44,031 nucleotides of DNA, taken from contig NW_024704842.1 in the NCBI RefSeq assembly GCF_018977255.1, positions 124,001 to 168,031 of the forward strand. The letters run 5' to 3'. Shown here in pieces: positions 1,731 through 30,379 of this stretch. The stretch comes from Callorhinchus milii. Its lineage: Eukaryota. The notes below the pieces were generated by a model. It searched no databases. It was not told where the DNA came from and saw only the letters and a program-made list of their open reading frames with translations. The stretch's first letter is position 1, and the number at the start of each line of letters is the position of its first letter. Both the position numbers and the translations under genes were made by a program.

Positions 1731-1787
1731 AGAACCCCACTTTACGGTACATTCCCACAAATATTCGTGGATTGAAACGGTACTCAC

Positions 1788-2702: not shown

Positions 2703-3205
2703 GCCCTGCATAGATCAGCGTAGATTTATTGGGTTATTACCAGAGATGAAGGGGATGAGTTTCCAGTGTAGGCTGACCAATTTGGGCCTTTATTCTCTAG
2801 ATATAGATGAATTAGGGGGATCTTATAGAATCCAATAAGATCATCAAAGGGCATGATAGAGTAGATAGTGGGAGATTGTTTCCCCTGATTGGAGAAACTA
2901 AAACCTGGGATCACATCCTTAAAATCAGAGGCCAGCCCTTTCGCACTGAGTTGAGGAAGAACTACTTCACTCAAATGATGGTGAATGTATGGAACTCACT
3001 ACCCCAAAGGGCTGTTGACGCTCAGTCCCGAACATATTCAAGACTGAGATAGATAGATTTCTTACTGCAAAAGAGATTAAGTGATATGGGGATAAGGCGG
3101 GGTCAGGTTATTAGCTGGAGTTAGATTAGAAGATCAGCCATGATTGAATGGCGGGGCAGGCTCGAAGGCCCTAATGGCCTAGTCCTCCTCCTACATGTTA
3201 TGGTA
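2703..3205 (+). mobile_element. CR1-type LINE 3' end (ORF2 C-terminus plus 3'UTR)
   Basis: Translates in the paralogous copy as FPLIGETKT..HILKIRGQPFRTELRKNYFTQMMVNVWNSLPQRAVDAQS.NIFKTEIDRFL; shark-type tail gatcagccatgattgaatggcgg..aatggcct. Confidence 0.85.
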
Positions 3206-8604: not shown

Positions 8605-8630
8605 AATGATTCCACGCTCTTGTCTTCCAG

Positions 8631-8760
8631 GCCTGATTCAGGGAAACTCTGTGACACAGAAGGTGGCTTCAGTGACTGGGGAAGAAGGAGGAAGTGTGAC
8701 TATGGAATGTCATTATGATACGTGTCTGAGCGGCTACCATTTATATTGGTATCGAGAACA
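8631..8760 (+). pseudogene. 5' fragment of a second TCR alpha/delta V exon
   Basis: tgtcttccag|GC CTG ATT CAG GGA AAC: (G)LIQGNSVTQKVASVTGEEGGSVTMECHYDTCLSGYHLYWYRE, then breaks into poly-C/CA simple repeat. No 3' half, RSS or leader found. Confidence 0.8.
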
Positions 8761-8779
8761 ACGCTTCCCACGTGCATCG

Positions 8780-9463
8780 ACCCAACCCCCCCCCCCCCCC
8801 ACACACACCACACACACTCTCTCTGCCATCTCTCACTCTCTCTGCTCTGTTCCTCCTTGTTTGTTTCACCAACTCTGTCCCTCTCTCTGCCGCTCTCCAT
8901 CATAATCGGTCTCTCAAACATTCGCTCACCTTCACCCTCCGAATTACTCTCTCCTACCCCCGTCTCTCTCCTTGCTTGTCAGCCCTGTTTCTCTCTCTGT
9001 GTGACACTCTCTCTCACTCAATTGCTCTCTCCTTCTCTCGTACTTCAAACGCCCTCTTAGTTCTGAATCGCACATTAACTTTTTTCTAACACAAGCATTC
9101 TTTTCCACTTGCTCTCAGTTGATCTCTCTCACTCCCCCTCTTACCCTCCCGCACTCTTTCTGTCCCCTCTCACACTCTCTCTGCATCACTTTATCTCTGC
9201 TTGCCCCCTTTTTCCCGATCCCCCTAAGATTCTCTCTCTATCAATCTCTCTTTCTCAAACACGCTCATTGTTGAGCCATCCAGTAAATTAAGCACTAATA
9301 TTTCTGATTCCGATTTTCACTCACACCCCTCGTCCTTTGTCTCTCCATCTCTCTCACAACCTGCCCTGCTCTCTTTTACTCTCTCACCCTCTACCACACA
9401 GACTCTCACTCTCGCTATCTTTCTCTTAGTCGCTGATTCTCAATGTGTCCCTCACTCAGTATT

Positions 9464-9496
<33 letters not shown>

Positions 9497-9710
9497 TTCT
9501 CTTTCTCGCAGGCAGTCCCGATGTCTCACTCTATCTCCTTCTCTCACTCAGTTTCCCATTCAGTCTCATTCAATCACTCTCTCACATTCATTCTCACTCA
9601 GTACCTCTCTCAATCTCTCGCTCAGTCTCTCACCCTCAGTCTCATTATATCTTACTCAGTCTCTCTCTCTAACTCATTCACACTCACTCACTCATTCTAT
9701 CTCATTCTGT
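8780..9710. repeat. CT/CA-rich simple-sequence region
   Basis: (CT)n, (CA)n and degenerate CTCA runs. Confidence 0.85.
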
Positions 9711-9837
9711 GACTCAATCTCCACTTATGTCAGCGAGACAAGTGCCGCGAGTGACCCATTGAAGTCAAACTGAAGCTGGTATTGAATATAGTTGCTGATG
9801 AGGAGCTGGAGCGAGGAGATGGCCACCGGCCTCCGGG

Positions 9838-9942
9838 CTACACTCTGACTGTGGCGTAGATTGGACCATCATTCTCACCGTTTTCATGGCCATTCTCAAT
9901 CCTGTTTCCCAACATCAGATTAGCGTAGATGATGTCAGCATT
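9838..9942 (-). CDS. Exon 12, terminal coding exon with ITIM IIYANL and ITIM-like PIYATV
   Basis: ctgtttgcag|AAT GCT GAC ATC ATC TAC GCT AAT CTG...CCA ATC TAC GCC ACA GTC AGA GTG TAG; not visible in the ORF track. Confidence 0.88.
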   Translation of the reverse strand, partial: NADIIYANLMLGNRIENGHENGENDGPIYATVRV

Positions 9943-11615
9943 CTGCAAACAGGGCAACACTCAATATATCTGCAGAAGGTCATTGGGAGTAAACCCTCCC
10001 CCACCCACCCCTCCCTGGAGACTCCGACTCATGTCTCCAGTGTGTGAGGTTGTTTGTTTCCCCTTCCCCACACCAGGAGTACTACACATGTTAAATTATC
10101 AGCAAGTGGAATCAAGTTTGTGATAAATCCCCCCGTAAATAAACCGGAGCCAACAATAATGACAATAATCTTGCGTTTAAGAAACTCCTCTGAGGTGAAC
10201 GACGCTGTTTGAACGTAAAATTAAACACAGACACACACAGACATCGAGAGTCTCTTTCTGACTCACACATACGTATACACACACACAAACACACACACAG
10301 TCACTTCCAAAAAGGCAGAAACATGCGCTCACAGAAAAACACAATCACGTAGACAGATACACAAGCACATGGTTCTGAAACTTTTCACGTTGAGAGAACG
10401 GCTGAAAGTGTTTAACAACATGTATTATAATTGGTGGAAAGTTTATGACCATAACCAAAAGGATCAGCTAAAATCAGTGAAAAATTGTTAACGGCCAGTG
10501 CAAGGGGAGATTCTCTCTTGCTTTTCTCAATATTGCCAAATTCCCGACTTTGAGGATAAAACCATGAATTTATAGCTCAAGCGCGAGTGCTTCCGGCTGA
10601 GACAGCGTGACCGATAGCCTGAGCTGGGTTGTGCCAGGCTGACACGGCTGAGCTGGGTTGACACAGTGCTGAGCTGGGCTGAGCCAGGTCTGACCTGGTC
10701 TGACACACGGCCAAAGCTGGTCTGTTGACACAGGGCGTGAGCTGGGCTGTACAGAAACTGAGCTGACACAGGGCTTAGCTGGGCTTACACAGAGTTGAGG
10801 TGAGCTGAAACAGAGCCTGAAGGTAGGCTGACACCTGGTGCAGCTGAACCGATACAGGGCCTGAGCAAGGCTGACACAGTGTTAAGCTGCCCTGACACAG
10901 GCCAGTGATGCATTCACTACTCACCATTGGAGGCACCGACCGGGGAACCTTTCTCACCGTAGCATCTGAAACAAACGGAAACTCTATTTAGCACAATTCA
11001 TTAACCGCACTATAGTTGAACAGTATTATTAAGGATATCAAAGGTTGCAGTAAATAATTATTAACGATAATGCTGATAGTAAATATTAGACCACAGTTAA
11101 TATTTTGATTAACATGGCATTTGAAAAAAACTAACTTATCACGACATCGTGAAGTCCCAAAGAGCTTCACAGGATTGACGGTGTAATGGAGTTACTGCGT
11201 ATACTGTCAATTAAACCTGGAAGACATTCATGCCAGCAGCCTCACAAGTACAAGTATGTGAACGATTTTTTCTCAGGATTGATGGCCAGATGGAGATCGT
11301 TGGCAGAGTGAGAGAGGTTCTCTTCTTGAACAGCGCCGAGGGATCTTTAATATCCTCCTAAACAGGCCCAAGTTTCCTCGGTTTATCTTAAAATCTGAAG
11401 GACGAAACTTGAAGTGGCTCAAAACAGTCAGCGACATAGAAAAAAACATGCAGACACACAAACACGCAACAGTAACACAACCTGGCACGCAGAGCGACCA
11501 AGAGAGTAGGAGAGTGGCAGACACACAGATTGGCACACACAATAGACACAGACTGACTAAGGGAGAAGGTGAGTGGAGACAAAGAGACACACAGAACAAA
11601 CGATAACGGGAGAGT

Positions 11616-11651
<36 letters not shown>

Positions 11652-14600
11652 ATGTATGAGTATTATTAAGGACTTAAAATCTTGCAATTAATAATCTTTA
11701 ATGATCATGCAAGCATTGGTGTCAGCAGCTCCAAAATCAGATGTACACTGGGCGTGAACAATTGTTTTCTGGAGGATTGTTGGACAGAGAGAGACTGTTG
11801 GCTATGAGAGACAAATTCTCTCTTTGAATTGGGCCGCGGGTTCTTCAAAGTCCACGAAAAAGGGCAGAAGGGACGTCGGTATATCGTCTCTTCTGAAAGA
11901 AAAAAAACTTGAAGTGGCTCAACTTGAGACAAGCGATTGACAGTCAGACACACAGACAATCATGCGGCAGACACACAGACAGAAACGCAGACAGACCAAG
12001 AGAGAAGGAGAGGGGCAGACATACAGATTGACACACTGTAAGACACCCAGAGAGATGAAGGAAGAAGGCGACTGCACAAGGGGAGAGACAGATCCAGAGA
12101 AAGAGAACAAGGAATCAATAGACTCTGGTTTGGGGGAAGCTCATGAGCAAGAGATTGGTTTTGTGTGGGGCTCGGGCCATCGGCTGACCAGACGAGGTTG
12201 TGATCAGCTCTTTTCACTCAGGACTCAAACCTAGGAAACTTCTCACTCACAGGTGACGTTGCTGGGTTCAGGGCCGCCTCCCGTGGGTACGTTCCTGCGA
12301 AAAAAACAGACAGATGAGAGCGAAATATTCTCTGCTGTTTTACTGAGGAGGATTGCGGTGCTCAGTCCAAGTCTTGTAACAGGGCTAACGACCAAACATT
12401 GACACTCAGCTGGAGTGAAGCGAGGGGGTGGGGAAGGTTTGTGTTGGGAGCCAGTTGTCTGAGGCTTGTGTGGAAACCCGTCACCATGGTGACGAGTATC
12501 CATACCATACGATGAATTCCAGTCATGCCTCCAATAGAAGGCAATTCCTTTTTATTTAATTAATATGCATTACATCTGCCAACCTAATCCCCATGTGGTT
12601 TAGGCACAATATGGCTAGAATCAGGGTTTAGCGACCTCACAGTATGAATTGGGATCCCACCAGCTAAAACCACACGGCTTGCTATAGGGAGCTCCGTCTT
12701 GCAATCTTCCTCTGCTTTTCGAGTTAGGAAATCTCTACCCGTTAGGGATTTATCCTGTAGTGTAGCAGGAGCTGAATAGGAGGATTCCTTACCCCCAATA
12801 TATTTTCTGCCCTCCAAGTGTTGCAAATGAGTGTGGGAGTGTACACATGTACAGACAGTTTGGAGAGAGAGCAGGGAATGGGATTAAATTGGAGATTTCC
12901 AGTGGGGTGCAAGCAACACCACAGACAGGATGGCGTGAGAGGAGGAATGGGAAGAGTATAGAGAGCTCCAGTCGGGGTGGAAGCACCTGTGCAAGCAGGA
13001 TGGGGAAATAGAATGAAATAGCGGTGAAATGTTCTCACCTTTCCCCACTTGAACTCTTCTGTTTACCTGTAATTGCAAAGGGTAACGCATGTCAAATATT
13101 GATTAGTACTGGTTGTGTATTTTTGTGGTTATATTAACAATAATCCTCCCTTTCATAGATTATTACCGTTTCATTACAAAGGGCAGTCCCTACCCAAACC
13201 CTTTCCCATCACTACCACCATCCATGGACATGCCTTCAGCCACTTCGCTACGCTATTTGTAAATACATCCCAGTTTCCATCTGATTTAGCTCTCGCTCCC
13301 ACCCTCACACCACAAGACCCATCACTTCAACCGGGTCTAGTATTTTTATTACTATTCTGTGTAATAAACACTGGCCTCAAATTGCAGTGACTCTGCTTTT
13401 TTAATGAAATGCTGCAGCCCATTGCACACAAGTGGGTAACAAAAGCGGACATGAAGTGACTGATCCATTTTATTTTGGGGATTGTTGGCCAGGATTCTCC
13501 CTTCTCTTTTCGAATGCTGCTGCAGGAACTGTAATGTCCACATGATCAGGAAAACAGGACCACGTTACAACTTTCTCACTGTGGGTACAGGCTGAAGAAC
13601 TTGGGAACAAAGTCTTGGAAACAAGAGTAGGGTACTGCACTGGATATTGACAGTAATTATCTCAATCCAAAAGTATCATTGTCGACAGCCTTTAAACATC
13701 GATATTATCAAGTACTCAAAGTTAAGGATAAAACTCATTGCCAATTTCGCTAACATAAACAACGACATGTCTTTCTAACTCAGATCCATGGTGCTGTCTA
13801 ATCTGTCCCAACAATAAATGACTTGATAAAGACTGAATGACTGTTTGGTAGCTTTGTTGTCAGGTCCCCATCTGCACTCATTGACACGCAGAATATCAAT
13901 ACAAAGTCGTTGTATACTTTCCTGTCTCCTTCTTTTGACCCACAAATATACATTAAATTCACATGACAGCATATTCTGTGAAGCGCTTTGGGACTTCGAG
14001 AAGACGGGAAAAGCGATATATCAAATGCAAGGTTTATTAATATTATTATTTATTCCCAATAACTTTAAGCCATATTCACTGATATTATTGGCCACTTACC
14101 TTTCTTATATTCACTGATTCCCAGTAGTAACACAATTATCATTAACGAAGCGACAATCCCCGCAGCCAGTCCTGTAATGTGCTTCCAGGTCCAATTTGCT
14201 GGAGAGGGAAATGACCAGAGTAATTTGTCGACTTTGAAGAGCTAATATGCTGGGAAAACCCTTTATTTTAAAGGCATCGCTGAGATCTTATCTCCTGCTA
14301 ATTTCAAAGCGCAAAAGAAGGAAATGTTTTCTCTTTTGCAATGAAAATTGCCGAATTTCCCCTCGTCTGTCTTCAAGAGAAAACTTCTCGACCCCTGATC
14401 CTGGGAAGGTTGAGCTAAATAGGGTCTCTTCTGGTGCTGCGCAAGTGAATAGCCAAGCTGCGGAAGATTGGAATCGAGGCCACACTTCATGGTGTTCCCC
14501 ATTCTTCTCCATGAGCCAGGCATGTCCCAGTATTCCAGGGAACTGCTGATAACAAAACAGTCCGGCCTGTCTCATCGTCATCAGGTTGAGGAGCAGATCG

Positions 14601-17600
14601 GACACTGGGAGCCGGATTATTTCTACGTTGGCTTTAAAAGTACAAGTCAGCGTGAGCATCTTGTTGGTATGTTGTGGGGCAAGAAGGGATAGTCTACACG
14701 ATTATGGTCAATGTGTGAGGTAGTGGTGTAAGTAACAGCTGTAATGCAAGAGCAAGATCTGGGTCCGCCCAACCTTGTCGCACTCCAAAACACACCGCGG
14801 AATGACGGAGATCAGTTCAGCAGCGATGCTTTCCGCTGTTTGCAGGAGAGAGGGTTTACACCCCAGATACGCTGTATAGGGATGGGTCGGGAATTTGGGT
14901 TTGGAAACTGTTTTATCGCGTGGATGGTTGCAGCCTGGATCAAGCAATCCAACTGAGAGCGGGAGATAACGTGGAAATATGATCGATGATATAAAGAGTT
15001 ACTGGAACAGAAGGTACTGTAAAAGATCAGAAGACAAGTAGATTTTTGTGTGAGATTATACCCAAACCTTACCGCGCACAGTGATTCCCATTCGATCGCT
15101 CGCTATTGATGTAAACACTCGTCCGTCTATTTGTGTAGTATATTTGCACGTGTAGTTTGCTGCACTGATCTCCGATAGGATGAATGTTACCGTGTTGTTA
15201 TTCTCTGGAGCTGGTTGTGATATGATAAACGCATCATCTCTGTAGAGAGAGAAATTGCTGCCAGGATAATTCCCAGAACATGAGATCTCAGCGCTTTCCC
15301 CTCTCACAAACACCCGGGAATCTGGCTTCAGCGAAATTTTGGCTTTCTGGAGCGGATCTGGAATAAAAACACAGTAAAGATCATCTCACAAACATTCGCT
15401 CTGTGAATAGAAACGTTTCAGGTTATAGCATAAAGGACCATTTGCTTCTTCCCATCCTGGTGAAGGTGTCTGGACGAAGTGAAGGTTTTGAGGGGCAGTT
15501 TCAGGGCAAACTCCAGCAGTCGTTTCTTTAGACAGAGGAAGGGTGCACAGCGGCTGACAGCGGAGTGGCCACGGAGGGCAGTGAGGCCGGGCAACTAACT
15601 AACAGCTTCAGCATGAGACGGCCGAACGGTAATTTAATCTGAACAGCACGTGTGATTTTCAGCAGTGTTTTAAACAACAGCGTAGGGTGTCAACCAACGG
15701 ATCAAACTTAATTCTGGAGCATCGACTTCACACAGAGGGAAATGGGATTGTGGAACTCGCTAACTGAAGCTATGATTCGATCAGATAGTCCAGATACATT
15801 CCAGACCTAATCACACCTTCATTTGAGTGAGAGGGACATATAGGATTTTGAGGCAGTGGGAGTGTGTGAGGCAATGAGCGACAGAGGAATAGGACGTTTT
15901 GGAGGGTGTTAGGAATTTGGAAGCAGAAATAGACGGTGTGGGATTAATAGAGTTTGTGAAAGGCAATGGGGTTGCGGTAGGTTATCAAGGTTTGTGAGGG
16001 AGGGTGGAAAATTGGTTGAGGGAGGCAGTGAATGTGAGGAAGGATGCGTGCTGTTGGAAGTGAGGGATTCAGTTTGATGGAGGAAGGGAGCAATGCAGAT
16101 AATCTGGTGTAAAAAAGCTAGTAAAATAAGATATTTATTTGGGGAGGAGAATTTTCCAGGGCTGCAGCGAGAGAGTTTGGGAGTGGGATTTAATCGGCTA
16201 GCTACTTCAGATTATCTGGCAAAGGAAAGATTGACAAATTTGCCTCCTTCTGTGCTGTATGATTCCATGATTAAATAAAATAAAGTGAGGATGGGGCGAA
16301 GGCGTGATATGATCGCAGTGACTGGACACTTGGGGCAATGAATACCACTGATGAGAGAGTTCAAGATCTCGCTCTTCCACTGATGAGAGAGTTCAAGATC
16401 TCGCTCTTAACCCACTGATGAGAGAGTTCAAGATCTCGCTCTTACCCCACAAAGAAATTCCCACTCGTTTGCTCTCTGGTGATGTGAGCTCGCGTGCGTC
16501 TTTATGTTTAGCATATTTACACGAATAATTCCCTGCACTGATCTCCGATGGGGCGAATGTTGCCGTGTTGTTTTTCTCATGAGTCGACTGTGATGACATC
16601 AACTTCCCTTCTCTGTATAAAGAGAAATTACTGCCTGGATAATTTCCAGAACATGAGATCTAAGCGCTTTACCCTCTCACAAACACCCGTGAATCTGGCT
16701 TCAGGGAAATGGTGGGTTTCTGGAGCGGTTCATGAATTAAAGTAAATATAATCTCACAAACACACACTTCGTGACATGAAAACAGTTCAGTTCAGACGAA
16801 CACTGTCTATTTTCTTATTTCTCAGCCTGAAGGATTCATCGTGAAGACTGGGAGAGGCAAGGGTTAAGGGACAGATTAAGGACAGGCCCGAGCATATGCT
16901 TCTTTAAACCTAGGGAGGGGACAACGGCTGGCACAGGGGTGGCCATGGAGGGCAGTGAGGCCGTGGCCTGATATTCCACAAAGCTATAGCCAGGGACCTG
17001 TGACAGGGAATACAGACAGAAACTCTCAACTGACCTTCAGACGTATTTAAATAACAGGATACGATCACATCCAGGGGACCAAACAGTAAATGTAGGAGCA
17101 ACGACTTCACACAGTAAAGTGAGATGGTGGGAATCATTGACTGAAGCGGGATTGGAATAAGACAGTATAAACACATTCAAGATGTCGCAAGACTTTCATA
17201 GGAGGGAGAGGAGATAAAAGATGTGGGAGGGAGTGAGGCTGTGGGAGAGAGTCAGTGTTTCGGAAAAATAGAGTGTGGGGATGGAAGCAATAGAATGTAC
17301 GTGCGGATGAGGAATAGAAGTAATGAAAGGTTGGGGAATAGGAAGTGTGAAATGAATTACGGGGGAAAGTGAGGAATTGAAGTAGACTTGTGTCATTGAG
17401 CATTTGGTACATGTGTTAGGATGGGTGGGCGGCGGGATGGGGGACAGTGGTAGTTGGAGGGCAGATCTGTGATCAAGGCTAATGTAATGCAAGTGGCAGC
17501 GAACGGCCATTTAACAGATTCGTGAGAGAAACGCAAACTGGTTATTATGTAAAATCATACCCAGATCTTACCCCACAAATAGATTCCCACTCGTTCGCTC

Positions 17601-20600
17601 TCTGGGGATGTGAACTCTCGACCGTCTATATGTGTAGTATATTTACACGTGTAATTTCCTGCACTGAAATCCGACAGGGTGAAATTTGACGTGTGGATGT
17701 TTTCCTGAGTTGTCCGTGATATGAGAAACTTGCCGTCTATGTATAAAGAGAATATGCTGCCTGGATAATTCCCAGAACATGAGATCTGAGCGCTTTCCCC
17801 TCCCACAAAGAACGGGGAATCTGTCTTCAGGGAAATGATGGCTTTCTGAAGTGGATCTGAAATTAAAACACAGTAAAGGTAATCTCACAAACACTCACTC
17901 TGATCTGATCTGTGACAGTGAACATCAGTGTCGACAATAAGCCCAGCCTCACCCTCTGAGACTGTTTCTCTCTGAGGTTTAATACGAGGCAGAAATGTGG
18001 GTGGTTCCAACTACGTGTCTTGATTTGACGCTGCAATTCTTCCGTATTGAAACACTTTTTGATGTTTGGGTATGTCTTTCTGTGAGCGAAGAGTCAGTGT
18101 TAGCTCGGAGTCAGTGTGAGCTCTGGATCAGTGTGAGCTCGCGATCAGTGTGAGCTCGGGGTCAGTGTGAGCTCGGGGTCAGTGTGAGCTCGGGGACACT
18201 GTAAGCTGGAGTTGCTTATAGCCTTGACTGCCTGTTCAGGTAGTGGTAACAAATCTCATGACGATATTCAATAACCGAAGGGATTCTTTTTCTGTTGCCA
18301 TTGCCAACAATCCCCAAATTAAATTTGATTGGCCCTACACTCCACCCATATCAATGGCACGTTGTTGCAGTTGTGGTCTATACCTGAACAGAATATGCCA
18401 CCGTCCTGCCCGTGTCCGCAGTCAGGCCGACCAACCACAGGCCCCGATCCTTCTCCAAAGCGAGCGTTACTTGAGACTGATACAGCAAATCCACATCCCA
18501 AATAGTTACAAATATATCCTGCCATCTCCATGTTCAGCGTCTCGCCACAAACTGTTCTCCAAGTGTCATAGTAGTACAGCTCAACTCTCCCCACACACCG
18601 GCTGTCTCCATTCACCAGTTTGGGTGGGTTACCTCCTGCCAAGTACATACAATACAATATCCACAGCAACAACTTCAAGCGTATGTGCAATTAACACAAT
18701 CTGTACCCTCACAAACAGCGGACGTTTGACCCTGGGTTAGCAGAGATGGTGAGACACACGTATAGCAGAGGAGGTGGGAACCTGGGATAGTAGATGCTGT
18801 GTGACAATGGGTTAGCCGAGGATGTGTCACATTGGGTTAGGAGGGAATCTGTGACACTGGGTGAGCCTGAGAATACATTGGAATATACAGCAGAGAAACA
18901 TTCGGCCCAACTGGTCTATGACGTTAATCACTCCCTGATTTCACTTTTCTGTTTTTTCTCCCCGCCCTGTGAATACCTCGAGTTTTAATAGCACCTCACT
19001 TGTGCTCAATCCCCTGCGCTCTCTCCCTTTGCTGATCCCCCTTTGGCTCAACACACTTGTACTCAACAACCTCGTGCTCTTACACAACTTGCTCTTACCC
19101 ACCTGTCCTCAACCCCACTGTGCCTACCGTTCCTGTTTACACACTCTCTGCTCACCCTCCTGTGAAAACCGCCCCGTAAACATCCCTTTGATTACCCCGC
19201 CCCCCGCCCATGGGTGATAACTTCCCTACTCCACAATATGCGGAATCTCACCTGCTCATTCACAATTTACCCACTATGGCCAGTACACTTACTCATATGC
19301 TCAACTCCCACGCCCCACACCCACCCCACCCTGTGCCACTCCTGGTTCTGCCCCCTGTCTTCTGCCCCAGTGTTCACCAATGCGCTCAACCCATGCTCAA
19401 ATTTACTTTCTCAAACCGCTGTGATCACTACCAATGCATCCCGCTCCCCGGTGCTCTGCATGTACCCCAGTGCTCATACCCTGTGCTCAGCCCCAGTATA
19501 CTCACCTCCCTCTCTACTCATCGCCTGTACTCACTTTTCTTCCGCTGCTCTCTCCCTCTGTTCACCCTGCAATACTCTCCCCCTCCCCTGTTCTTACACA
19601 GCCTGTGCTCTGTCTTCTTGTTTTGAGGCCCCTGTGCACACACCCACCGTTTCTTATCCCACACGTGCTCACTCCACTGCTGTGCACTGCGTTCTTGTTC
19701 TGAACCCCTGTTGTACTCACCCCCNGTCTGCTCAACCCCTGGTTCTCACCGCCTTGTGACCCTCGTGTGCTTTCGACTCTGTGCATTTCCATCTTGTGTT
19801 GATCCTCCTGCTTTCCACCATATGCTTCCCACCCATATGACCACTCCGTCATTTAACTCTCCTATACTTCCCTCTGCCCTATGATTACCTCACGTGTATT
19901 CACCACCCGACTTGTGCTCATTCCACTATGCTCTCCGCCTTTGCTTGCCTTCCCTTTTTCTCTTCCCACTTTTACTTAATCCTCCCCTTGGGCTCTTAAC
20001 TTCTGCACTCTTACCACCGCCTGTGCTCAACGCCACTATGACTGCATCCCCTATTTAGAAAGACAACGCTCACAATCCCTCTGCGTTACGCCAGACCGGG
20101 CGCTGCTCCCCGCTTGTTGCCACCCACCTGTGCTCGCCATTCGTGCTCTTCATCCAGGATTCACCTCCAAGCGCTTCCCCTCTGCTCAACCCATCCTTTT
20201 GCTCGCCATTGTGCTGAATCCCCCTTTTCTTATCCACACTGTGCTCCTCTTACCCTGTACAGTTAACTCACTTTGCAGTCTATTGTGTGAAGCGTTTTGG
20301 GATATCCTTCCAAGAGCATTATAAAATGCAAGGATTATTATTATTACTCATCCCTCCTGTGCTCACACCCACCCATGTGCATTAACTCTGTGATACGCCC
20401 AATGTGCTTAACCCCTGATCTTCCCGATAAGCTCACCAACACATATGCATTCCCCGGTTACCACCCCTTGTTCTCCACAAATTGTTTGAAACAGCTCACT
20501 CACTGCCTCAAATTCCCCTGCTCATCGCACTCATGCACACCCAATCGCCCCGGGCTCTCCCTGCATGTCTACTCATCTCTCTGTGCTCTGCCCCACTGTA

Positions 20601-23600
20601 CTCAACTCCCTTTGCACTGCAACACTGTACTCACCCGCCACTCCCGACCCCCTTTGTACTTCCGCTTCCCAGGGCTTAGACCCGGTGCTCACCTTCCTTA
20701 TGCTCAGCCCCCTGTGCTCAAAACCATATGGGCTCACTCCCCTGCTGTGCACACCCTCCTTGTGCTTATTCCACTGTACTCGCCCAACCTATACTCAACT
20801 CCGCTTCATGCTCCACACTCCGTGTGCTCAGTACATCCACTGTCTGCCCTACTGTGCTCACCCTCAATGCGTTCAGATGCTGAGATCATCATCCCTTGAG
20901 CTCACCTTCTCCTCAGCCCTGCTTTGCTCACCATGCTACACGTGCACACCACTGGGCTCGCACCCTGTGCCCCCGTGTGCTCTCCAGCGAGCATACCGCA
21001 TGTACTCCCCACCCTGTGCTAAGCAATCCTGTTCTCCAAACCCTCTGCTCATTCCCCCACTGCGCTCAACGAACCATGCTTATTCCACATTTATAGCCCT
21101 CTCCTCACCACACAATTTTCTCGGCCCTTTGTGCTAACCCCAAACCCAGTGTGCCTATTCCCCTTGTGCTCAATGTTCCCTGAGCGCAAATCACTGTGCT
21201 ATCGCTCCAAGTATTCAACCCTGTAGTTAACCGCTGTCCTACACCACCATTTGCTGACACTCTGCGATCATTGGCGTTGCTCACAACCTGGGATGCCCTG
21301 CCCTGTGTTCACCCACTGCGCTCACCCACGCTGTGCTTACGCACCATGTACTCCTTTCCAGTTTACGCACTCGCTTGTGCTCAACCACAGGTCTCAGCGC
21401 CCTTTGGCGACCTCCTAACCATCCCCTCGCTCACACTTGCCCTCACCCCAAGCACGAGGTTATTCTAAAAGATAGACTTATTTAACTGAGCAAATGACGC
21501 CGACATCGTATGTTTTGGATTTGGAAAATTGATCACAGTGCTATGAGCGCAAACACTCCACTCAGGTTTAATAATAAACTAACATATTATGGGATACAAG
21601 CTTTAACAATGTTTTTCGATCCGCAGTTTTCCGAAAACATGAGGAAAGAAAAATGATCGAAGACTGAAATATTTACCTGAACAGATGACGCCGGCATCAT
21701 AGGAGTGTGGCCAGGAATAGCCACCACCCCAGGGCTGTGACAGACAATCCCTCAGAGTAGACTCACTCCCTCTGCACCGGACATTCCACGTCACAACGGG
21801 ACCTGAGCCTTCACCAAAGTGAGCGTCTCCTGATGCTGAGAGCGCGGCTCCACAGCCCAACTCCTTACACACCACAGACGCGTCCAACATATCCCAACCA
21901 TCGTCACCAGAGCCAAAGCCATTCACTGTGCCCCACTGTCCATTGCGAAAAACCTCCACTCTCCCGGCACAGGGGCTACCGCCATTCACCAACCTCAAAC
22001 GATCTGCCAAAATGAAATAAAATCTGCCACACAATCACTGTAAGACATCACGCAGAATATTGAACGTAATCGAAGGTAATACTTCACAAGGTGCATGTCG
22101 CATTGCGAGGATTTCTGGACGGTAAACAATACAACAACAATAATAATCATTATAATGGTTCCAATGACCGTTGGCTACATACAGTCCAAAACCCGGGTAT
22201 CAACAATAATATTAACAATTCATTCTGCGGCTACATATACCCGTTGCAGCTGCCTTTGGAACAGAAGGATAGAGCTTTTATATTATTATACTGAATATTA
22301 TATTATTATACTTTATACAAGATTATTATAATTTATATAAAGATAGGAGATTCCCCCAAAATATGGCAGTTGTTTATTGCTTTGTTACAGAACACATTAA
22401 TGCGCATGTGTTACTGAAAGAATAGTGTGTAATTTTCTCTGTCGTCAATTCATTGCGGAATATTATCCAAACATCACATTTTGGTGCTTCATTAAAGTTA
22501 TTTTAAGTGTATCTCATCAAGGATAGGCATTGCTCTGGAGTACGTCCACGACTCTAAAACAATAAGAGCTTCCCGAAGAGGTAAAATCGTTCTACATCAA
22601 TTGTGTATTGCGCTCTGGCAGATACAAAGATGCAGATATTGTTGTTTTATTATTGCATTAGCAGCTCGCTTTTTGTTGTTTGAATATATGTTTGTGTGTG
22701 TATGGGGGTGTGGGGGAGTCGCGGACGCATACAATGCACCATCACACACAACACGAACGAACCCAGGCACAGACACTAGCACAACCCCAACTCCGGCCAA
22801 AGCACCTCGCCCCGAGGACACAGCCCTCACCCACAGCGCCAGAGCACAGCCACTCCCCAAGGCACAGACACCACCGACAGTGCACAGTCGCAACAATACA
22901 AAACAGAAGACATCCCCTATGGCACAGCAACCGTCCACGGGGAATAATCAAACCCCCAGGTTACACAGACCCTACACAAGGAAGCCCCACCCCAGGTAAA
23001 GGCAGATCCAGACAAAGACCGCTCTCCCTGGTACAAACCCCTCACAGGTAACAGCAACTACTCCCACCTCCGATAGCTGCCTCTCAGGCTCATCGGTGCG
23101 CTGCTTCGGCACAGTGCTCTCTTGCCCTGCCCTACCAACGAGGGCACAGCTTCCCCACAAGGTACAGCGATCTTGAACCCCTGCAGAAACCCCACACCTG
23201 CCCCCCGGTAGAGCCCTCACTGCCAAAACAAACCCAGGGTCCACCGACCACTTCCCACTGTACAGGCCCCACCACAGGCTCATCTCTTGACCCACGTCAC
23301 AAGCCCCACAATTTCACATCCCCACAGGATCAGCCACCCACCCACGGTACAGAGACGCCTCAGAGGACAGTCCCTCCACAGAGCACCCAACCTGACACAG
23401 CGCGATGGATGGACAGCCGAACTCCAAACGTACAGCACCCTACCAGTCACAGTCCATTCCCAGAGCACAGTCCCCAACTGTCACAACCCCATTCCGTCAC
23501 AGGCATCTCCCGGAAACAGCTGCTGCCCCAGAGCACAGCTGCCATCCAAGGTACAGCCTCCCCAACGTGCACAGCCTCCTCCAGAGCAAAAGCCCTCCAC

Positions 23601-26600
23601 GCCGTTTTGCTCAAACCCCTTGTATCCTTACTCATCCTGTGTACAACTACCTCTTGCTCACCCAACCTGTTGACACACCCATCGGTTTACACCTTTGTGT
23701 TCCCACCCATACTCACCCCATACTCCCCGCGTATGCACAAACCCCAGGTGCTCCCCGTCTATTCGTACCACCCCCGCGCTCCCCATGTTCTTTACCCAAA
23801 ATTTTGCTCGTGATCCACTGTGCTCTTCACTCCGGTTGTCATCCTCTACTTGTGTTGTGTTTTATTTTTGTTGTGTGTTGCGTTGGGGGGCGATCCGACC
23901 TCCCAACCGGACTCTCGCTTCGCCGCGAGTCGCTTCGGTCTCGCGCACCGACCGAACCCGACTCCCGTCCCCGCGCTCACGCGACGAACGCACGAGACGT
24001 CACGGAACAGGGCGGTCTGTGCCGCCCTCTGACGCGCCGGCGGGGAATTAGCTCAGATGGTAGAGCGCTCGCTTAGCGTGCGGGAGGCGGCGGCGGGGTC
24101 GATGCCCGCATTCTCCAGCGGGTCCCCCCCCCCTCCTTTCACGCATAATCGTTGCGTTCAATTGTTTAAGGTGTTTCTCCTGTATAAATGATGACTTTTA
24201 CCGACCAGGAACATTTCTGTTAGGAACGCCTAATAATAATCCCTTCAAAAACCAAAAACAATAATTAATTGGTCATTTTCAATCCACGACTGTTTGTGGG
24301 ACATTGCTGTGCGCAATTGGCTGCCGCGTTCGCCCACAAATATACAGTCAATTCACTTTACAGTGTGTTCTGTGAAGCGCTTTGGGACGTCCTCCCGACG
24401 TGAAAAGCGCTATATCAAATGCAAGGATTATTATTATTATTATTATTATTGTGCTCACCGTCTATTATTACGCCCTGTGCTAACCATGAGCGCTCCCTCC
24501 CTCTGTTCCTCCCATTCTGATACCTCCATGTGCTCCCCGATGTGCTCAGACCCCTGAGCTCAAAACCTCGGTGCTCAACACCTCTGGCCAAATTCTCCCA
24601 ATATGCTATCCCCAGAAACGCGTCCATTTTACACCCCGTGTTTAACCAAACCAGAGTGATCAACACCTTCCCTGTGCTCATCCACTCCTCTGCTCAGCTC
24701 ACGAGACTCACATCTTCGTCCTAAACCCGCTTGTTTTCCTCACGTGCTAAACCCAAATCATTCTCATCCCGTGTCCTTAAACCCCCTTTGCTCGACACAC
24801 CTGTTCTCAACGCATGTGTTACCCTTCATGTGCTCTGCCCTTTGTGCTCACTGATACTCAACTCAACCCTCCGTACTCACCCCATTGTGCTCATCCCCGA
24901 AAGTGCTCACACCATTTGCTCACCCCTTGTGCTCCACCCCTGTGATGTCCAATGTGCTTACCGACCCTGTGTTTAACCAAATCCTGTACTCAAATCCCCG
25001 GTGTTTACCTCTACCGTGCTCATTACAAGCCCCGTGGTCACCACCAGGCCCATCGCGCATCCACCGTATGCTAATCCCTCCTCTATGCTCACTCCTACTG
25101 TACTCAGCCCATTGTTTTCTAACCCCATGTTGCACCCCTTTGTGCTATCCACGTCCCAACTGTTCTCACCTAACTCCGAGCGCTCAATGCTCCCTGTGCA
25201 GAACCCAAATTTGCTCAACTCCTATGCTAAACCTCCACGTACTTAGTCCCTCTGCTCAACCACCTTGGACCCTCCCCCCCATACTCTGCCCCTTGTGGCA
25301 GTCCCTGTGCTCAGCCGCCTGTTCTCAACACTGCCCCCAACCCGTGCTCACCCCACCAAACGACCCACTCGGAAAACGACCTGATGATGATCGACAGATT
25401 TGTTTAACTAAGCAGATGACGCAGACAACATATGTGTGCGACCCGCATTTATGTCCCTAGGGCAATGAGCGTGAATCCACTCCTTCCCACCAACCCCTCC
25501 ACACCAGATTTAATAATAATACACTGACATATTGCGGGTTACAAACTTTTACCAGAATCTCCCTAATTCTAATTCCTATTGAGACATTGAAAAATCATCA
25601 GACAATGAATTAATTACCTGAGCAGATGACGCCAGCATCAGAGGAGTGTGACGAATAATAGTGACGCCAGTTCTCTGAGGAACAATATCTTAGTGCATAC
25701 TCACTCCCTTTGCACCGAACATTATACGTTATTATGTGACCAGAGCCCATCCCAAAGTGAGCGTCTCCTGAGGCTGACAGCGCGGCTCCACAGCCCAACT
25801 CCTTACACACCACAGCCGCGTCCAGCATATCCCAACCAGAGTCACCAGAGCCATAGCCATCCACTGTGCCCCACTGTCCATCGTGATGAACCTCCACTGT
25901 CCCGGCACATCGGCTGCCGCCATTCACCAGCCTCACACTCACTATAAAACACCATACGCAACATTGAGAGTCCGTTTCGTTTTGACTTCCAGTCACTCAG
26001 GATAATATAATATAATGTACATGTACAGAAAAGGTGTCACATTGGGAGGATGTTTGGCGTTAAAAAAATACAACAACAATAATAATCATTATATTGGTTG
26101 CAGTGTTTGCTGGCTGTACACGACCCAGGTGTCACCATAAGAGTAACAGGTTATTGCAGTACCAGCTGTACATGTTGCAGCTCCGTTTGCAGATAAAGGA
26201 TAGTGATATTATACTTTATCTTATTATGCTCTACATTATTATACTGATATTGGATTATTTTACATCATATTGGACTGTTATACTTTATATTAAACTATTC
26301 TAGTCGATATTACAATACTATACTCTATGATAGATTATTAAACTTTATATTTAGATTTACGGTCAGGACACAATTTTACACAAGTTTCCTCTATCCACAT
26401 GCTTCTGTTTATCTAGCAGTCAGTGGGAACCCAGCAGTCAATTGGCGTTTCTTTTCTGGGGATAAGAATCCCTTAAAAAAAATGTAATTTGGTCATTCAA
26501 TCCATGAACTTTGTGAGACACCACTGTGTGCGATTGGCTGCCGTATATCTCCAGCAAAGCTAGCAGCTGTTTCATATTGCAGTATATTCTGTGAAGCATT

Positions 26601-28671
26601 TTGGGACCCGATAAGGCTCTAAAACAAATCCATGGATTTTTATTATTATTATCATAGTTTATATTAGATTACTACAATTCGTATTTCATTATTAAACGTT
26701 GTATTATATATTTATTCTTCTACTTTATATACGATAGGAGATTCCACACAAACTATGGCCATGGTTGACTGCTTTGTTACATAATATATGAGTGCAGATC
26801 CCTCAGAGCAGACTCGCTCCCTCTGTACTGAACACCATACTTCAGAATAAAGCTTGGTCGATTTGGAAGGTCTTCAAAAGCTAACTGAACATGCAGAAGG
26901 AATGGGCAAGGCACAGGGATTGAGGAACAGTGATAATATTCCCAAAGCAACATTTGATTGTTAGATTTTGTGTCACTAACCTGCAGATTCCACAGACTTT
27001 CTCTCCAGAAGTATTACTGTACAAGGGAAAAAAAGACCAAAGCAGGAATTATTGGTAAAATAATTCACCCAAAAATCTGCCGTCACATAACCGTTCCTTG
27101 GCTACAGGCAGCCACTCAAGTTCGCCGTCAAAAAGATCATGAGTGGGGGAGCGAACACCAGCGCAAATACAATCGGGAAAAAAGGAACAGAGATTGGGAT
27201 TATTGTAGAGCGCTCCAGTTGGGGAGCGAACACCATCACAGACACCATGGAGAGAGCGCACAATAGGACTGTACAAAGATAACTTTCACAGACTGACAAG
27301 CATACGATTGGGCTGAACGGCATTTTCTGCGAAAGAAAAAAACACAAATTACTGCAGATGCTGGATATCAGACAACAACAACAAAAGTCGTTGGGCACAT
27401 TCAGCAGTTGAGGCAGCAGATCATACGAAGGTTAGAGGAAACGAAACGTTGACTGTCTTTATTTTCTCCTTAGACGTTGCCTTACATGCAGAGAGTTCCA
27501 AGCGACTTCTGATTTTTGTTTTCTGAGCAAGGGCCGTTTGTGTTTCTGTTTCGCTTTGGAGGCTTGGGAAAGAAGCGATTTGCTGACCACTCACAAACTG
27601 AGAAATTTATGTATAACAGACAGAGCAGATTGTGTCTCTCTTTCTGTATCAAGTGTGCTTACTGGCTGTTGTTTTTCCTGGTAGCTTCTGTTCCGTTAAC
27701 CAACAATAACAACTTGCATTTTGGCATCTTGCATTTATAAAGCAATACGTTAATGAGGGAAAGCATAGAAATGACTTTCTCGCCTCACTTTCCACTTTCT
27801 TCTTTCTTAGCTTTTGCACTAGACCCTCCGGCCTCTCCAAAACAAACAAAAAATTAAGGAGCCTGTAGGACAAAGACAACTAAGGTGATCGGACGCACGT
27901 TCAAAGGGAAGAGTGTTCAGATTTATCTTGAAGGAAGCAAGGAAATGTTGAGGGAGTGGGACTGCAGAATGTATTCCCATTGGATGGTTAGAGAGTGGCT
28001 AAATGCTCGCCCGTCAATGTGGGGCTGTGAGGTGGGAGACGTGAATCAGGCTGGAGTCCGCTGAGCTGAGAGAGCGGGTAGATTGATAAGGCGTAGGAGG
28101 TCGCAGATGTAGGGTTGTGTGAGGACATGGAGGGCTTTCAATGTGAGTAACAGGATCGTGAACTGTATCCAAGGATGGGGATGATACGGTCACAGAGACT
28201 GGTGGAGGAGATGACACCAGCTGCAGGTTTCTGGATGATCTGCAGTCGATAGAGGGTACAGATTTTCTTTCTAACTGTCTGGCTTGCACGACTCTCCGAA
28301 TGGGATGTAATCATAAATACTAATTCTTGCATTTGATATAGAGCTTTGATGTCTTCAAGACATGTCTAACGTGAATTCACCTTATATTTGTGGGCGAAGT
28401 GCGGTTGGCAATTGCACATAGCAGTGTCCTACAAACTGTCGGTGATTGAAAATGAGCAATACAGCATTGTTTTGTTTAGGAGCGGTTATTATCAGGAGTA
28501 TAGAGGAGAAATTGCCCAAGGGTTCGCCCTGCCTGGAAAAGGAAAAAAGTGTCTCGCTTGCAAGGCGATTGCTCTAACCACAGAGCTACAGAACCCCACT
28601 TTACGGTACATTCCCACAAATATTCGTGGATTGAAACGGTACTCACCGAAAATAAGAAACAATGATTCCAT
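9838..28671 (-). CDS. Multi-exon gene for a type I membrane receptor: leader-SRCR-SRCR-SRCR(short)-Ig-Ig-TM-ITIM tail (616 aa when the dead Ig exon is skipped)
   Basis: Exons 28671-28647, 27016-26981, 25941-25618, 22003-21677, 18635-18384, 17856-17572, 15357-15073, 14198-14100, 13066-13039, 12294-12251, 10965-10925, 9942-9838. All have GT/AG boundaries. Phases 1,1,1,1,1,1,1,1,2,1,0 join into one open frame of 1851 nt ending in TAG. Confidence 0.85.
10600..10900. repeat. Degenerate minisatellite (gctgggctgacacag-like)
   Basis: Repeated gagctgggct / ctgacacag motifs in intron 11. Confidence 0.7.
10925..10965 (-). CDS. Exon 11, cytoplasmic (YATVRKVPRSVPPM), completes ITIM VTYATV
   Basis: tttgtttcag| acceptor, ATG|GTGAGT donor; 41 nt, phase 1->0. 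Confidence 0.8.
12251..12294 (-). CDS. Exon 10, cytoplasmic (RNVPTGGGPEPSNVT, ends in first base of ITIM Tyr codon)
   Basis: ttttttcgcag| acceptor, CCT|GTGAGT donor; 44 nt, phase 2->1. Confidence 0.8.
13039..13066 (-). CDS. Exon 9, cytoplasmic (GKQKSSSGE)
   Basis: ttgcaattacag| acceptor, AAG|GTGAGA donor; 28 nt, phase 1->2. Confidence 0.75.
14100..14198 (-). CDS. Exon 8, transmembrane exon
   Basis: ANWTWKH-ITGLAAGIVASLMIIVLLLGI-SEYKK; no charged residue in the core, GxxxG present; tttccctctccag| acceptor, AAG|GTAAGT donor; 99 nt. Confidence 0.9.
15073..15357 (-). CDS. Exon 7, membrane-proximal Ig domain (C2/LILR-FcR-like)
   Basis: DPLQKAKISLKPDSRVFVRGESAEISC...ANYTCKY...SIASDRMGITVR; tttattccag| acceptor, G|GTAAGG donor; 285 nt, open. 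Confidence 0.92.
15470..16100. mobile_element. Decayed LINE fragments shared with 16860-17500 (part of the duplicated Ig cassette introns)
   Basis: Shared blocks ggagggcagtgaggcc, cgacttcacacag, g(ga/tg)gaa(ctcg/tcat)..actgaagc and G-rich L2-like sequence in both inter-Ig introns. Confidence 0.45.
16345..16443. repeat. 3 x 32-nt tandem repeat at the donor of the dead Ig exon
   Basis: ccactgatgagagagttcaagatctcgctctt at 16345, 16377 and 16412. Confidence 0.95.
16446..16730 (-). pseudogene. Dead Ig exon (middle copy of a triplicated Ig cassette)
   Basis: Same 285-nt length as, and clear similarity to, the flanking Ig exons. Acceptor reads ...ttcatg| (no AG). In-frame TAA (16671-16669) and TAG (16662-16660) stand where exon 7 has GAA/GAG. 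Donor GTAAGA is intact. Confidence 0.9.
17572..17856 (-). CDS. Exon 6, Ig domain 1 (C2/LILR-FcR-like)
   Basis: DPLQKAIISLKTDSPFFVGGESAQISC...GNYTCKY...SPESERVGIYLW; aatttcag| acceptor, G|GTAAGA donor; 285 nt, open. Confidence 0.92.
18094..18195. repeat. 6 x 17-nt minisatellite
   Basis: tcagtgtgagctcgggg units at a 17-nt period. Confidence 0.95.
18384..18635 (-). CDS. Exon 5, shortened SRCR domain 3 (internal deletion removes C5-C6)
   Basis: [28 protein letters not shown]...ICNYLGCG...FGEGSGPVVGRPDCGHGQDGGIFCS; cttggcag| acceptor, G|GTATAG donor; 252 nt, open. Confidence 0.9.
18990..21450. repeat. Degenerate C-rich minisatellite (ctgtgctca-ccc); paralogous tracts at ~23600-23830 and ~24470-25350
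   Basis: Dozens of tgtgctc/tgtactc motifs with strong C/T strand bias. Confidence 0.8.
21677..22003 (-). CDS. Exon 4, SRCR domain 2 (group B, lacks C2 and C7)
   Basis: [27 protein letters not shown]...DAGVICS; ttttggcag| acceptor, G|GTAAAT donor; 327 nt, open. Confidence 0.95.
22740..23590. repeat. Degenerate CA-rich minisatellite (cacagcac-like)
   Basis: Repeated cacag/acagc motifs; produces spurious Pro/Thr-rich ORFs. Confidence 0.6.
24042..24117 (+). tRNA. tRNA-Ala(AGC)-like gene, probably variant or pseudo
   Basis: GGGGAATTAGCTCAGATGGTAGAGCGCTCGCTTAGCGTGCGGGAGGCGGCGGCGGGGTCGATGCCCGCATTCTCCA: acceptor, D and T stems pair, anticodon AGC; 3-nt GCG expansion in the variable loop; intronic and antisense to the receptor gene. 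Confidence 0.75.
24220..24450 (+). mobile_element. Headless SINE body and tail (further copies near 13860-14050, 20270-20347, 26420-26660, 41070-41245, 41480-41700; minus-strand tails near 33840-33920, 37560-37650, 39190-39250)
   Basis: tgtttgtgggacattgctgtgcgcaattggctgccgcgtt...gtgaagcgctttgggacgtcc..gtgaaaagcgctatatcaaatgcaagg(att)n; resembles the SacSINE1/DeuSINE 3' region as I recall it. Confidence 0.75.
25618..25941 (-). CDS. Exon 3, SRCR domain 1 (group B, lacks C2 and C7)
   Basis: VSVRLVNGGSRCAGTVEV...VVCKELGCG...VRCKGSE..LRYC...DAGVICS; ttttatag| acceptor, G|GTAATT donor; 324 nt, open. Confidence 0.95.
26981..27016 (-). CDS. Exon 2, 36-nt second leader exon (VILLERKSVESA)
   Basis: Strong pyrimidine tract tcttttttttcccttgtacag| and donor CAG|GTTAGT; phase 1-1; completes a signal-peptide-like segment. 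Confidence 0.8.
28316..28590 (-). mobile_element. Paralogous copy of the same SINE in intron 1 of the central gene
   Basis: Matches 1455-1730. Confidence 0.7.
28647..28671 (-). CDS. Exon 1, first part of leader (MESLFLIF)
   Basis: cgaaATGG good Kozak context; ATG GAA TCA TTG TTT CTT ATT TTC G|GTGAGT consensus donor. Confidence 0.8.
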
Positions 28672-29565
28672 TTCGAGAGTGAGGAGGAGCTCGAGTCAAA
28701 TACAGAACCTGGAGGATTGTGTTTGTGTCCGACGGGGAAGGATCTCTACAGACTTAAATCACACGGAGTAATTCTCAGGAGAAGCTTTTGACAGTGTCAC
28801 CCTGCTCTGTGATCACCAAGCATCCACTTCTCTGTAACACTTGCATCGAAAGCTGTTGTGACACACACACTGAGGAACAGTCTGACACACACACACATAC
28901 ACACACCGAAACAGACACACTGAGCTGCGATAGACACACACACACAAACACACACTCAGAGAGGAACACGAACTGTGACTTACAGATGTATATTTAACGA
29001 CGTTTAGAGACGGAATCAGAGACTCAGAAACTCTCTCTCCCTTAATCTCTCTCTCTCTCTCCGCAGAACGAACAGGATATGTGATGTCCTTTACTGGAAT
29101 CGTTACAACACTCGCACACAAACCGCAAGCGTGAAGCTGATTCTCAGAAACTGCAGAACGTTATTTAAGTGCGGTGAGCAATGCTCCGATTGGGAGCTGT
29201 GAGTTGAGCTGGACACCCAGCGCTGAGTATTTTGTGGAATGAAGAAGTAGGTTCTTCCTGGTGTCACATTGGCCACTTCTCCATTTCTGTGTGCAAAATT
29301 CTGCGTGTTTGTGTTCGTCTACAAATACACATCACAACATATTTCATTAATTCCCGTGAAAAACTTGGACGGATTCCACGCAGCAATGAATCCTGGAGTC
29401 AAATGTAACAGTACATAGACAGGAGAAATCACACATTTACGTTCTCAGTTTAGCCTCTTTGACGGATTACCTACTTCCTCATTTCAGTTGCTCACATTTT
29501 ATCTTTTCTTGCGACATCCTTCTTTCCTTCCCCGCAGTATTTCAAGGCATTGATTGCTGATTAAT

Positions 29566-30070
29566 GCCCTGCATAGATCAGCGTAGATTTATTGGGTTAT
29601 TACCAGAGATGAAGGGGATGAGTTTCCAGTGTAGGCTGACCAATTTGGGCCTTTATTCTCTAGATTATAGATGAATTAGCGGGGATCGTATAGAGTCCAA
29701 TAAGATCATCAAAGGGCATGATAGAGTAGATAGTGGGAGATTGTTTCCCCTGATTGGAGAAACTAAAACCTTGGATCACATCCTTAAAATCAGAGGCCAG
29801 CCCTTTCGCACTGAGTTGAGGAAGAACTACTTCACTCAAATGATGGTGAATGTATGGAACTCACTACCCCAAAGGGCTGTTGACGCTCAGTCCCCGAACA
29901 TATTCAAGACTGAGATAGATAGATTTCTTACTGCAAAAGAGATTAAGTGATATGGGGATAAGGCGGGGTCAGGTTATTAGCTGGAGTTAGATTAGAAGAT
30001 CAGCCATGATTGAATGGCGGGGCAGGCTCGAAGGCCCTAATGGCCTAGTCCTCCTCCTACATGTTATGGT
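29566..30070 (+). mobile_element. CR1-type LINE 3' end, paralogous copy
   Basis: ORF 29741-29950 is the CR1 ORF2 C-terminus; near-identical to 2703-3205. Confidence 0.85.
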
Positions 30071-30306
30071 ATGTCTCCATCCGTCTGTTACTATCACAAT
30101 ATCTGTCACACACACATTGTTTCTCTCAGATTCCCAGTCTCTCTCCATCTGTGAATCTCAAAGCTTCGTTAACACACAAACTGTGACTCTCACAAACTCT
30201 CTGTCACTCACTCTCACAAACCCAAGCCGACTCTCCCTCTACATCTCTCAAACACTCACTCATACTCCCCATATTGTTCCCTCACAATACCAGTCTGTCT
30301 TAAAAA

Positions 30307-30343
<37 letters not shown>

Positions 30344-30379
30344 CATATACAGACCTGATCAATTTAAGGTGTATTCAAG

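Follow-up and report, generated by a model that had tools for sequence, protein, structure and literature searches.

The sequence analysed here (the window) is a 44,031-nt stretch of the elephant shark, Callorhinchus milii, from a 168-kb unplaced scaffold (MU249905.1, assembly GCA_018977255.1). On its minus strand lies a gene of 12 exons that encodes, in order, a split leader, three SRCR domains, two Ig domains, an uncharged transmembrane segment and a cytoplasmic tail with the tyrosine motifs VTYATV, IIYANL and PIYATV. The gene is an intact member of an elephant-shark multigene family that has been annotated automatically but never described. Its product is probably a type I membrane immunoreceptor: an atypical SRCR head set upon a receptor that resembles those of the leukocyte receptor complex (LRC) and carries immunoreceptor tyrosine-based inhibitory motifs (ITIMs), by which it would act as an inhibitor. 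Coordinates are positions in the window; because the gene is on the minus strand, the start of each exon has a higher number than its end.

A twelve-exon gene in a single frame

The exon model was assembled from open stretches and splice sites, with one small exon (cyt1) located by a fuzzy search using the loose end of an RNA contig. All 12 exons have canonical AG/GT borders, the phase is continuous throughout, and every exon from the first to the transmembrane exon ends in phase 1. The gene spans 18,834 nt of the scaffold from exon 1 to exon 12, exactly the interval first marked out, and the spliced coding sequence of 1851 nt translates into 616 amino acids, as in the original prediction. The original prediction of 12 exons splicing in frame into this domain order was thereby confirmed, the domains by a Pfam run and by the translation. 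The same model is present in RefSeq as XP_042201732.1, identical at every residue, under the name ‘deleted in malignant brain tumors 1 protein-like’ (DMBT1-like), which is a misleading automatic label. The gene is therefore already predicted in public databases, and it is one of several paralogs. Literature searches nonetheless returned no publication describing this gene, or any SRCR-Ig receptor from a shark or teleost, in keeping with the expectation that no receptor with such a tail had been characterised.

The leader is split between two exons. Exon 1 (28671-28647) supplies the start codon, in an AAATGG context, and the first part of the signal peptide (MESLFLIF), and ends in phase 1 at a GTGAGT donor; the same N-terminus is found in the family models P0153 and P0275. 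Exon 2 (27016-26981), a 36-nt second leader exon of phase 1-1 with AG/GT sites, encodes V-ILLERKSVESA, which matches VIFLERKPVETA of P0153. Three SRCR exons follow, each domain being a single phase 1-1 exon: exon 3 (25941-25618; SRCR1, Pfam SRCR E 3.6e-26 over the full length), exon 4 (22003-21677; SRCR2, E 1.4e-27) and exon 5 (18635-18384; SRCR3, E 1.2e-13). The introns between them (18700-25600) are C-rich, of strongly skewed low complexity, and contain long spurious open reading frames on the plus strand; a single N stands at 19725. The repetitive N-terminus of one sister model, P0264, seems to have been translated from a stretch similar to these introns.

Exon 6 (17856-17572) encodes the membrane-distal Ig domain (Ig1; Pfam ig/Ig_2) and exon 7 (15357-15073) the membrane-proximal one (Ig3; Pfam Ig_2/Ig_C19orf38), each matching Ig families at about 1e-6. 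The name Ig3 is kept for the latter, the second Ig exon in use, since a dead Ig exon of 285 nt (Ig2, 16730-16446) lies between the two. Exon 8 (14198-14100) encodes a stem and the transmembrane segment. The tail is divided among four exons: cyt1 (exon 9, 13066-13039, 28 nt); cyt2 (exon 10, 12294-12251, 44 nt), which ends with the SNVT of the first ITIM; cyt3 (exon 11, 10965-10925, 41 nt), which begins with the Y-ATV of that motif; and the coding part of exon 12 (9942-9838), with IIYANL, PIYATV and the stop codon.

Transcripts join the SRCR exons to the Ig, transmembrane and tail exons

Logan contigs from four RNA runs were aligned to positions 13200-19150 and 9500-15400. From SRCR3 to the last exon the RNA joints coincide exactly with the predicted borders. 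SRCR3 is joined to Ig1 in two runs (17856>18384), Ig1 to Ig3 with the dead exon skipped (15357>17572), and Ig3 to the transmembrane exon (14198>15073). Joints on the far side of the transmembrane exon (13062>14096, cut at +4), between cyt1 and cyt2 (12293>13038, cut at +1), between cyt2 and cyt3 (10965>12251) and between cyt3 and exon 12 (9942>10925, in three runs) complete the tail. One contig of 891 nt contains Ig3, the transmembrane exon and all four tail exons and runs into the 3′ untranslated region; another, of 260 nt, covers SRCR3, and its 26 further letters correspond to the end of SRCR2. A further joint, 16730>17572, uses the Ig2 exon, which is dead in this copy, and so derives from a paralog. 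Transcripts of the family thus link SRCR exons to Ig, transmembrane and tail exons.

The original prediction had itself raised the alternative that the SRCR exons and the Ig-transmembrane-ITIM exons are two separate genes that merely look spliceable. One sister copy does have split RefSeq models: P0275, which is SRCR-only, and P0277, which starts inside SRCR2. However, P0277 itself holds both SRCR and Ig parts, and four independent family models (P0153, P0165, P0234 and P0264) each combine the two domain types. Since RNA contigs join SRCR3 to Ig1 and SRCR2 to SRCR3, separate genes are already contradicted at the level of the family, and for the present locus we regard them as scarcely credible.

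A different division of the gene deserves more attention. Beyond the donor of SRCR3 another 21 codons can be read before a stop (18383-18320, minus strand), and the same extension ends the 337-residue SRCR-only RefSeq model of the sister copy (P0275). In runs X1 and X2 the SRCR3-Ig1 intron is covered by RNA at 10-30% of the depth of the exons, and run X4 contains this copy's SRCR3 and no Ig1. A soluble SRCR-only isoform produced by way of this intron is possible. That such a read-through protein is the main product here, with the membrane ITIM form minor or absent, is nevertheless quite improbable: SRCR3 is spliced to Ig1 in two runs, the intron signal may stem from pre-mRNA or from DNA carry-over, and it is the membrane form that RefSeq models for this gene.

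In the intron between the transmembrane exon and cyt1 (13440-14230) all runs show RNA contig depths in the hundreds to thousands, and loose ends are numerous. The likeliest source is an interspersed repeat that is heavily transcribed and stands outside the gene proper.

An atypical SRCR head

Group-B SRCR domains have eight conserved cysteines, which form four disulfides. Each of the three SRCR domains here has six: SRCR1 and SRCR2 lack C2 and C7, and in SRCR3 the loop carrying C5-C6 is absent. All three match CD163, CD5L, CD6 and DMBT1 strongly and are group-B relatives by sequence. At 84 amino acids SRCR3 covers just positions 1-63 of the 100 in the Pfam profile; it is a short subtype rather than a broken domain, and paralogs as well as a basking-shark protein have kept the same short form. 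The latter (Cetorhinus maximus P0171, SRCR-only) has both unusual subtypes side by side, the one lacking C2 and C7 first and the short one after it, and the SRCR module is therefore older than the divergence of chimaeras and sharks. For the short domain, an AlphaFold2 model built from an alignment of six sequences reached a mean predicted local distance difference test (pLDDT) score of 46, too low to be of use.

In DMBT1, MARCO, CD6 and CD163, ligand binding is mediated by acidic cation sites (PMC7043408), formed in DMBT1 SRCR8 by D1019, D1020, D1058, D1059, N1081 and E1086 (PMC7043408). When the present domains are aligned to this site, with an insertion of five residues after the C2 position, the equivalent positions are mostly non-acidic in all three: TYN or TWN stands in place of LDD and S or Y in place of the glutamate, and all that may be left is a DD or DS pair ahead of WD.

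Ig domains of the LRC type and a dead Ig exon

A profile built from 23 Ig domains of the family was searched against the PDB. The best match was PIR-B (5.9e-12), followed by LILRB2 (6.5e-8) and NKp46 (1.8e-7) and then by LILRB1, LILRA3, OSCAR and KIR3DL1; FcεRIα, CSF1R and FCRL4 reached just 6e-4 to 2e-3. These similarities identify the Ig domains as C2 domains of LRC type.

Ig1 is the domain that varies most among copies, being 86% identical to its paralog where SRCR3, the transmembrane segment and the tail are 96-99% identical. In the RNA contigs, 13 nucleotide changes in Ig1 relative to this copy give 11 amino-acid changes, most of them common to the sister protein. Such variation is compatible with neutral or with diversifying evolution, and we make no claim of positive selection. 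Ig1 might contribute to ligand binding, but its variation also fits neutral drift.

The acceptor of the Ig2 exon is lost through a change of AG to TG, and two stops stand in frame, TAA at 16671-16669 and TAG at 16662-16660. In the paralog LOC103172721 (P0152/P0277) the corresponding exon is intact and spliced, and it is skipped in a predicted isoform of that gene, X3 (P0005). Because this copy has lost the acceptor and gained two stops, the two-Ig form is fixed in it; the form is obligatory here and merely an alternative isoform in the sister copy. A 32-nt unit that includes the donor site of the dead exon is repeated in tandem 3.1 times at 16345-16447.

Transmembrane segment, tail and proposed signalling

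The transmembrane segment, ITGLAAGIVASLMIIVLLLGI, has no charged residue. If an ITIM is defined as (S/I/V/L)xYxx(I/V/L) in a type I receptor's tail, where the transmembrane segment is uncharged, two canonical motifs are present in the tail of 72 residues: VTYATV (Y569), split between cyt2 and cyt3, and IIYANL (Y588). PIYATV (Y611) is the third tyrosine motif.

The tail is 98.6% identical to that of the sister protein, as against 86% for Ig1, and the 891-nt contig, which derives from an expressed paralog, shows 0 differences in 105 positions of the ITIM exon as against 19 in 338 in the adjoining 3′ untranslated region (Fisher p 0.01). Because of this contrast the tail is judged, from sequence comparison, to be under constraint.

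By analogy with LILRB, PIR-B and KIR-L, the receptor would work as follows. The ectodomain would bind a ligand; when the receptor was brought near an activating receptor, Src-family kinases would phosphorylate Y569, Y588 and Y611; phosphatases with SH2 domains, of the SHP-1, SHP-2 or SHIP type, would then be recruited and would damp activation of the cell.

How far the reading holds for this copy

A number of observations weigh against reading this gene as an intact inhibitory receptor, and they are best considered together. With respect to function, the inhibitory signalling is deduced from the motifs, and the third of these, PIYATV, is ITIM-like rather than canonical because it has a proline at position -2. 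At the other end of the molecule the cation site typical of SRCR domains has not been kept. The original prediction had envisaged a pattern-recognition SRCR head fused to an LRC-type Ig stalk and an ITIM tail: SRCR head, stalk and tail do occur together in this one gene, but a pattern-recognition role for the head is not backed, because the cation-binding residues are mostly replaced.

With respect to expression, the contigs over the transmembrane exon, Ig1 and Ig3 have the letters of paralogs, as at 14148 (S529A). The only RNA contigs that match this copy exactly are one of 190 nt in run X4, which is this copy's SRCR3 with 0 differences, and some low-depth pieces; of the exact words of the Ig1 exon, at most 35% are present in any RNA run. 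Mapping RNA to the predicted junctions, proposed as a check at the outset, has thus found the joints where they were expected for the family, but because the contigs carry paralog letters the expression and full-length splicing of this very copy are not established. Lastly, the copy could be decaying, given that one of its Ig exons is already dead.

Put at its strongest, this becomes the proposal that the copy is a silent or decaying duplicate whose reading frame is still intact, the expressed receptors coming from sister copies. The damage to Ig2 (acceptor, two stops and a triplicated unit at its donor), the scarcity of exact Ig1 words, and the fact that every RNA contig over the transmembrane exon, Ig1 and most of Ig3 differs from this copy at diagnostic sites are all in line with it. 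Yet the 12 exons in use are all open with canonical sites. Loss of Ig2 need not harm function, because isoform X3 of the sister gene is also predicted to skip it. The X4 contig fits the SRCR3 of this copy at three sites that differ in LOC103172721, one of which differs also in P0275, and the absence of other contigs is weak evidence because Logan contigs drop minor variants. We therefore consider a silent duplicate unlikely, though less so than a gene whose main product is soluble, and retain the reading of an intact family member encoding a membrane receptor as the probable one.

Sister genes and surroundings of the locus

Further members of the family in C. milii are LOC103172721, LOC103173597, LOC103191288 and XP_042201248. 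They are 56-94% identical to the gene described here and share its leader, SRCR subtypes, Ig type and tail, but the numbers of SRCR and Ig domains vary, and it is in the present copy that the middle Ig exon has been lost. In P0234, also from the elephant shark, a canonical eight-cysteine SRCR domain is joined to the same Ig-transmembrane-ITIM module. XP_042201248 (P0165/P0027), on another scaffold, comprises an SRCR domain, a short SRCR domain and one Ig domain, followed by a transmembrane segment with NVAR (an NxxR motif) and by a short tail, and is a candidate for the activating partner of the ITIM forms. In this sister an SRCR-Ig ectodomain of the same type precedes the NxxR motif and the short tail, which gives the family the look of a paired inhibitory and activating receptor system of the LRC type.

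Within the window, positions 1-5442 are 90-95% identical to 27066-33386, and exon 1 has a duplicate at 1812 on the minus strand. A stretch comprising the 5′ flank and the first exon thus recurs ∼26.9 kb downstream, where it forms the start of the next tandem copy, represented in RefSeq by a fragment of 118 amino acids. The remaining coding features of the window are V-set segments: just 3′ of the gene and on the opposite strand are two open stretches resembling T-cell receptor V segments, at 7429-7734 (plus strand; Pfam V-set E 9e-9, stopping before the usual YYC) and 8606-8902 (plus strand; E 5e-4, partial).

On yet another scaffold of C. milii a model named ‘TRIM17-like’ (P0233) combines a PRY/SPRY (B30.2) domain with a partial SRCR domain and two of the family's Ig domains; no transmembrane segment is evident. 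It represents either a further, butyrophilin-like shuffle or a merged prediction.

Comparison with known receptor families

The inhibitory receptors of the LRC (LILRB1-5, mouse PIR-B and the inhibitory KIR) are the closest in design. They share with the present gene the C2 Ig type, which also gives the best PDB matches, a single phase-1 exon of ∼285 nt for each Ig domain, a split leader, an uncharged transmembrane segment and ITIMs of the VTYAxV or xIYAxL type. In KIR, LILR and CHIR genes the second leader exon is 36 bp long, a hallmark of the LRC, and the 36-nt exon of phase 1-1 found here has that length; literature searches for a source on the 36-bp exon yielded none that was usable. By comparison, FCR and FCRL genes have a second leader exon of 21 bp (PMC7940838; PMC2413239). 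An NxxR transmembrane motif is characteristic of the activating LRC receptors (PMC6557307), and activating relatives of this kind have their likeness in the NVAR of the sisters P0165 and P0027.

There are also differences. Three SRCR domains precede the Ig domains here, whereas LRC ectodomains consist of Ig domains only; we know of no LRC receptor with SRCR domains. Identity between the Ig domains of this gene and those of mammalian members is low. The LRC has a conserved neighbourhood that includes TTYH1, LENG8/9, RPS9, CNOT3, PRPF31 and others; the present gene lies on an unplaced scaffold beside V segments like those of T-cell receptors.

Group-B SRCR receptors (CD163, CD6, CD5 and WC1/SCART) likewise have SRCR domains encoded by single exons and are type I membrane proteins with tyrosine motifs in the tail. 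They differ from the present protein in its six cysteines per domain, its mostly replaced cation site, its Ig domains and its LILRB-like tail.

The statement in the original prediction that FCRL-type receptors lack SRCR domains overlooked FCRLS, a mammalian Ig/SRCR chimera which has been called ‘unique’ in that respect and whose probable origin is exon shuffling (PMC7940838). Our literature searches recovered no other described chimera of Ig and SRCR domains. FCRLS resembles the present protein in uniting Ig-like receptor domains and a group-B SRCR domain (PMC7940838), but has them in the reverse order: FCRLS has N-terminal Ig domains of the FCRL type, one C-terminal SRCR domain and a 21-bp second leader exon, has neither a transmembrane segment nor ITIMs, and is secreted. 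Here, SRCR domains precede Ig domains of LRC type, the second leader exon has 36 nt, and both a transmembrane segment and ITIMs are present; by these features the gene falls outside the FCRLS/FCRL family.

Distribution and origin of the architecture

An exhaustive HMMER search with one Ig exon returned 390 representatives, and 37 of the best 150 also contain SRCR domains. Rays, a sawfish, sharks, bowfin and several teleosts supply the named examples, all of them under automatic RefSeq names (‘uncharacterized’, ‘DMBT1-like’ or ‘IGSF1-like’), and the ESM Atlas holds several SRCR+Ig clusters of 50-150 chordate members each. The bare combination of SRCR and Ig is thus common among unnamed fish proteins, much as the original prediction had suggested for automatically annotated teleost proteins.

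These proteins resemble the present one in mixing SRCR domains and related Ig domains in a single membrane protein. However, in those sampled the SRCR domains are of the canonical kind with eight cysteines, the domains are far more numerous and often interleaved, and the tails lack ITIMs; their Ig domains are just ∼30% identical to those of this gene, as against ∼60% within the species. Among the SRCR+Ig proteins sampled, ITIMs are added only in the elephant-shark members. In elasmobranchs, ITIMs or charged transmembrane segments are carried by Ig-only relatives.

The most likely origin of the architecture is that SRCR exons of phase 1-1 were shuffled onto a gene with an LRC-like Ig-transmembrane-ITIM design. 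Because SRCR+Ig proteins outside the chimaeras differ from those of the elephant shark, Ig-only relatives carry ITIMs, and P0234 has an eight-cysteine SRCR domain, comparison of these sequences points to repeated shuffling of such exons rather than to one ancient fusion.

Implications for the LRC and its receptors

Receptors that combine ITIMs with LRC-type Ig domains are central regulators of natural killer cells, myeloid cells and B cells in mammals. A survey published in 2019 considered it uncertain whether any receptor family of fish is a counterpart of the LRC (PMC6557307). The elephant-shark family unites the Ig type, a 36-nt leader exon, an NxxR partner and LILRB-like ITIMs, described as four hallmarks of the LRC. 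It is a tentative possibility, though on balance a doubtful one, that the family is the true counterpart of the LRC in cartilaginous fish: that paired receptors of LRC type were present in the ancestor of jawed vertebrates and that holocephalans grafted a six-cysteine SRCR head upon them. Were this so, that ancestor would already have possessed the LRC Ig type, the 36-nt leader exon, the activating NxxR transmembrane segment and ITIM tails like those of LILRB; the elephant-shark proteins would constitute a new class of receptor, with a mode of ligand binding unlike that of either parent.

For the present the practical value of the gene is limited, belonging as it does to a multi-copy family and being already in RefSeq under a misleading name. 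Its interest lies in the architecture: an SRCR head on an LRC-like receptor is a combination without a characterised example, and it offers a handle both on the age of the LRC-type paired-receptor design and on the part played by exon shuffling in building immune receptors.

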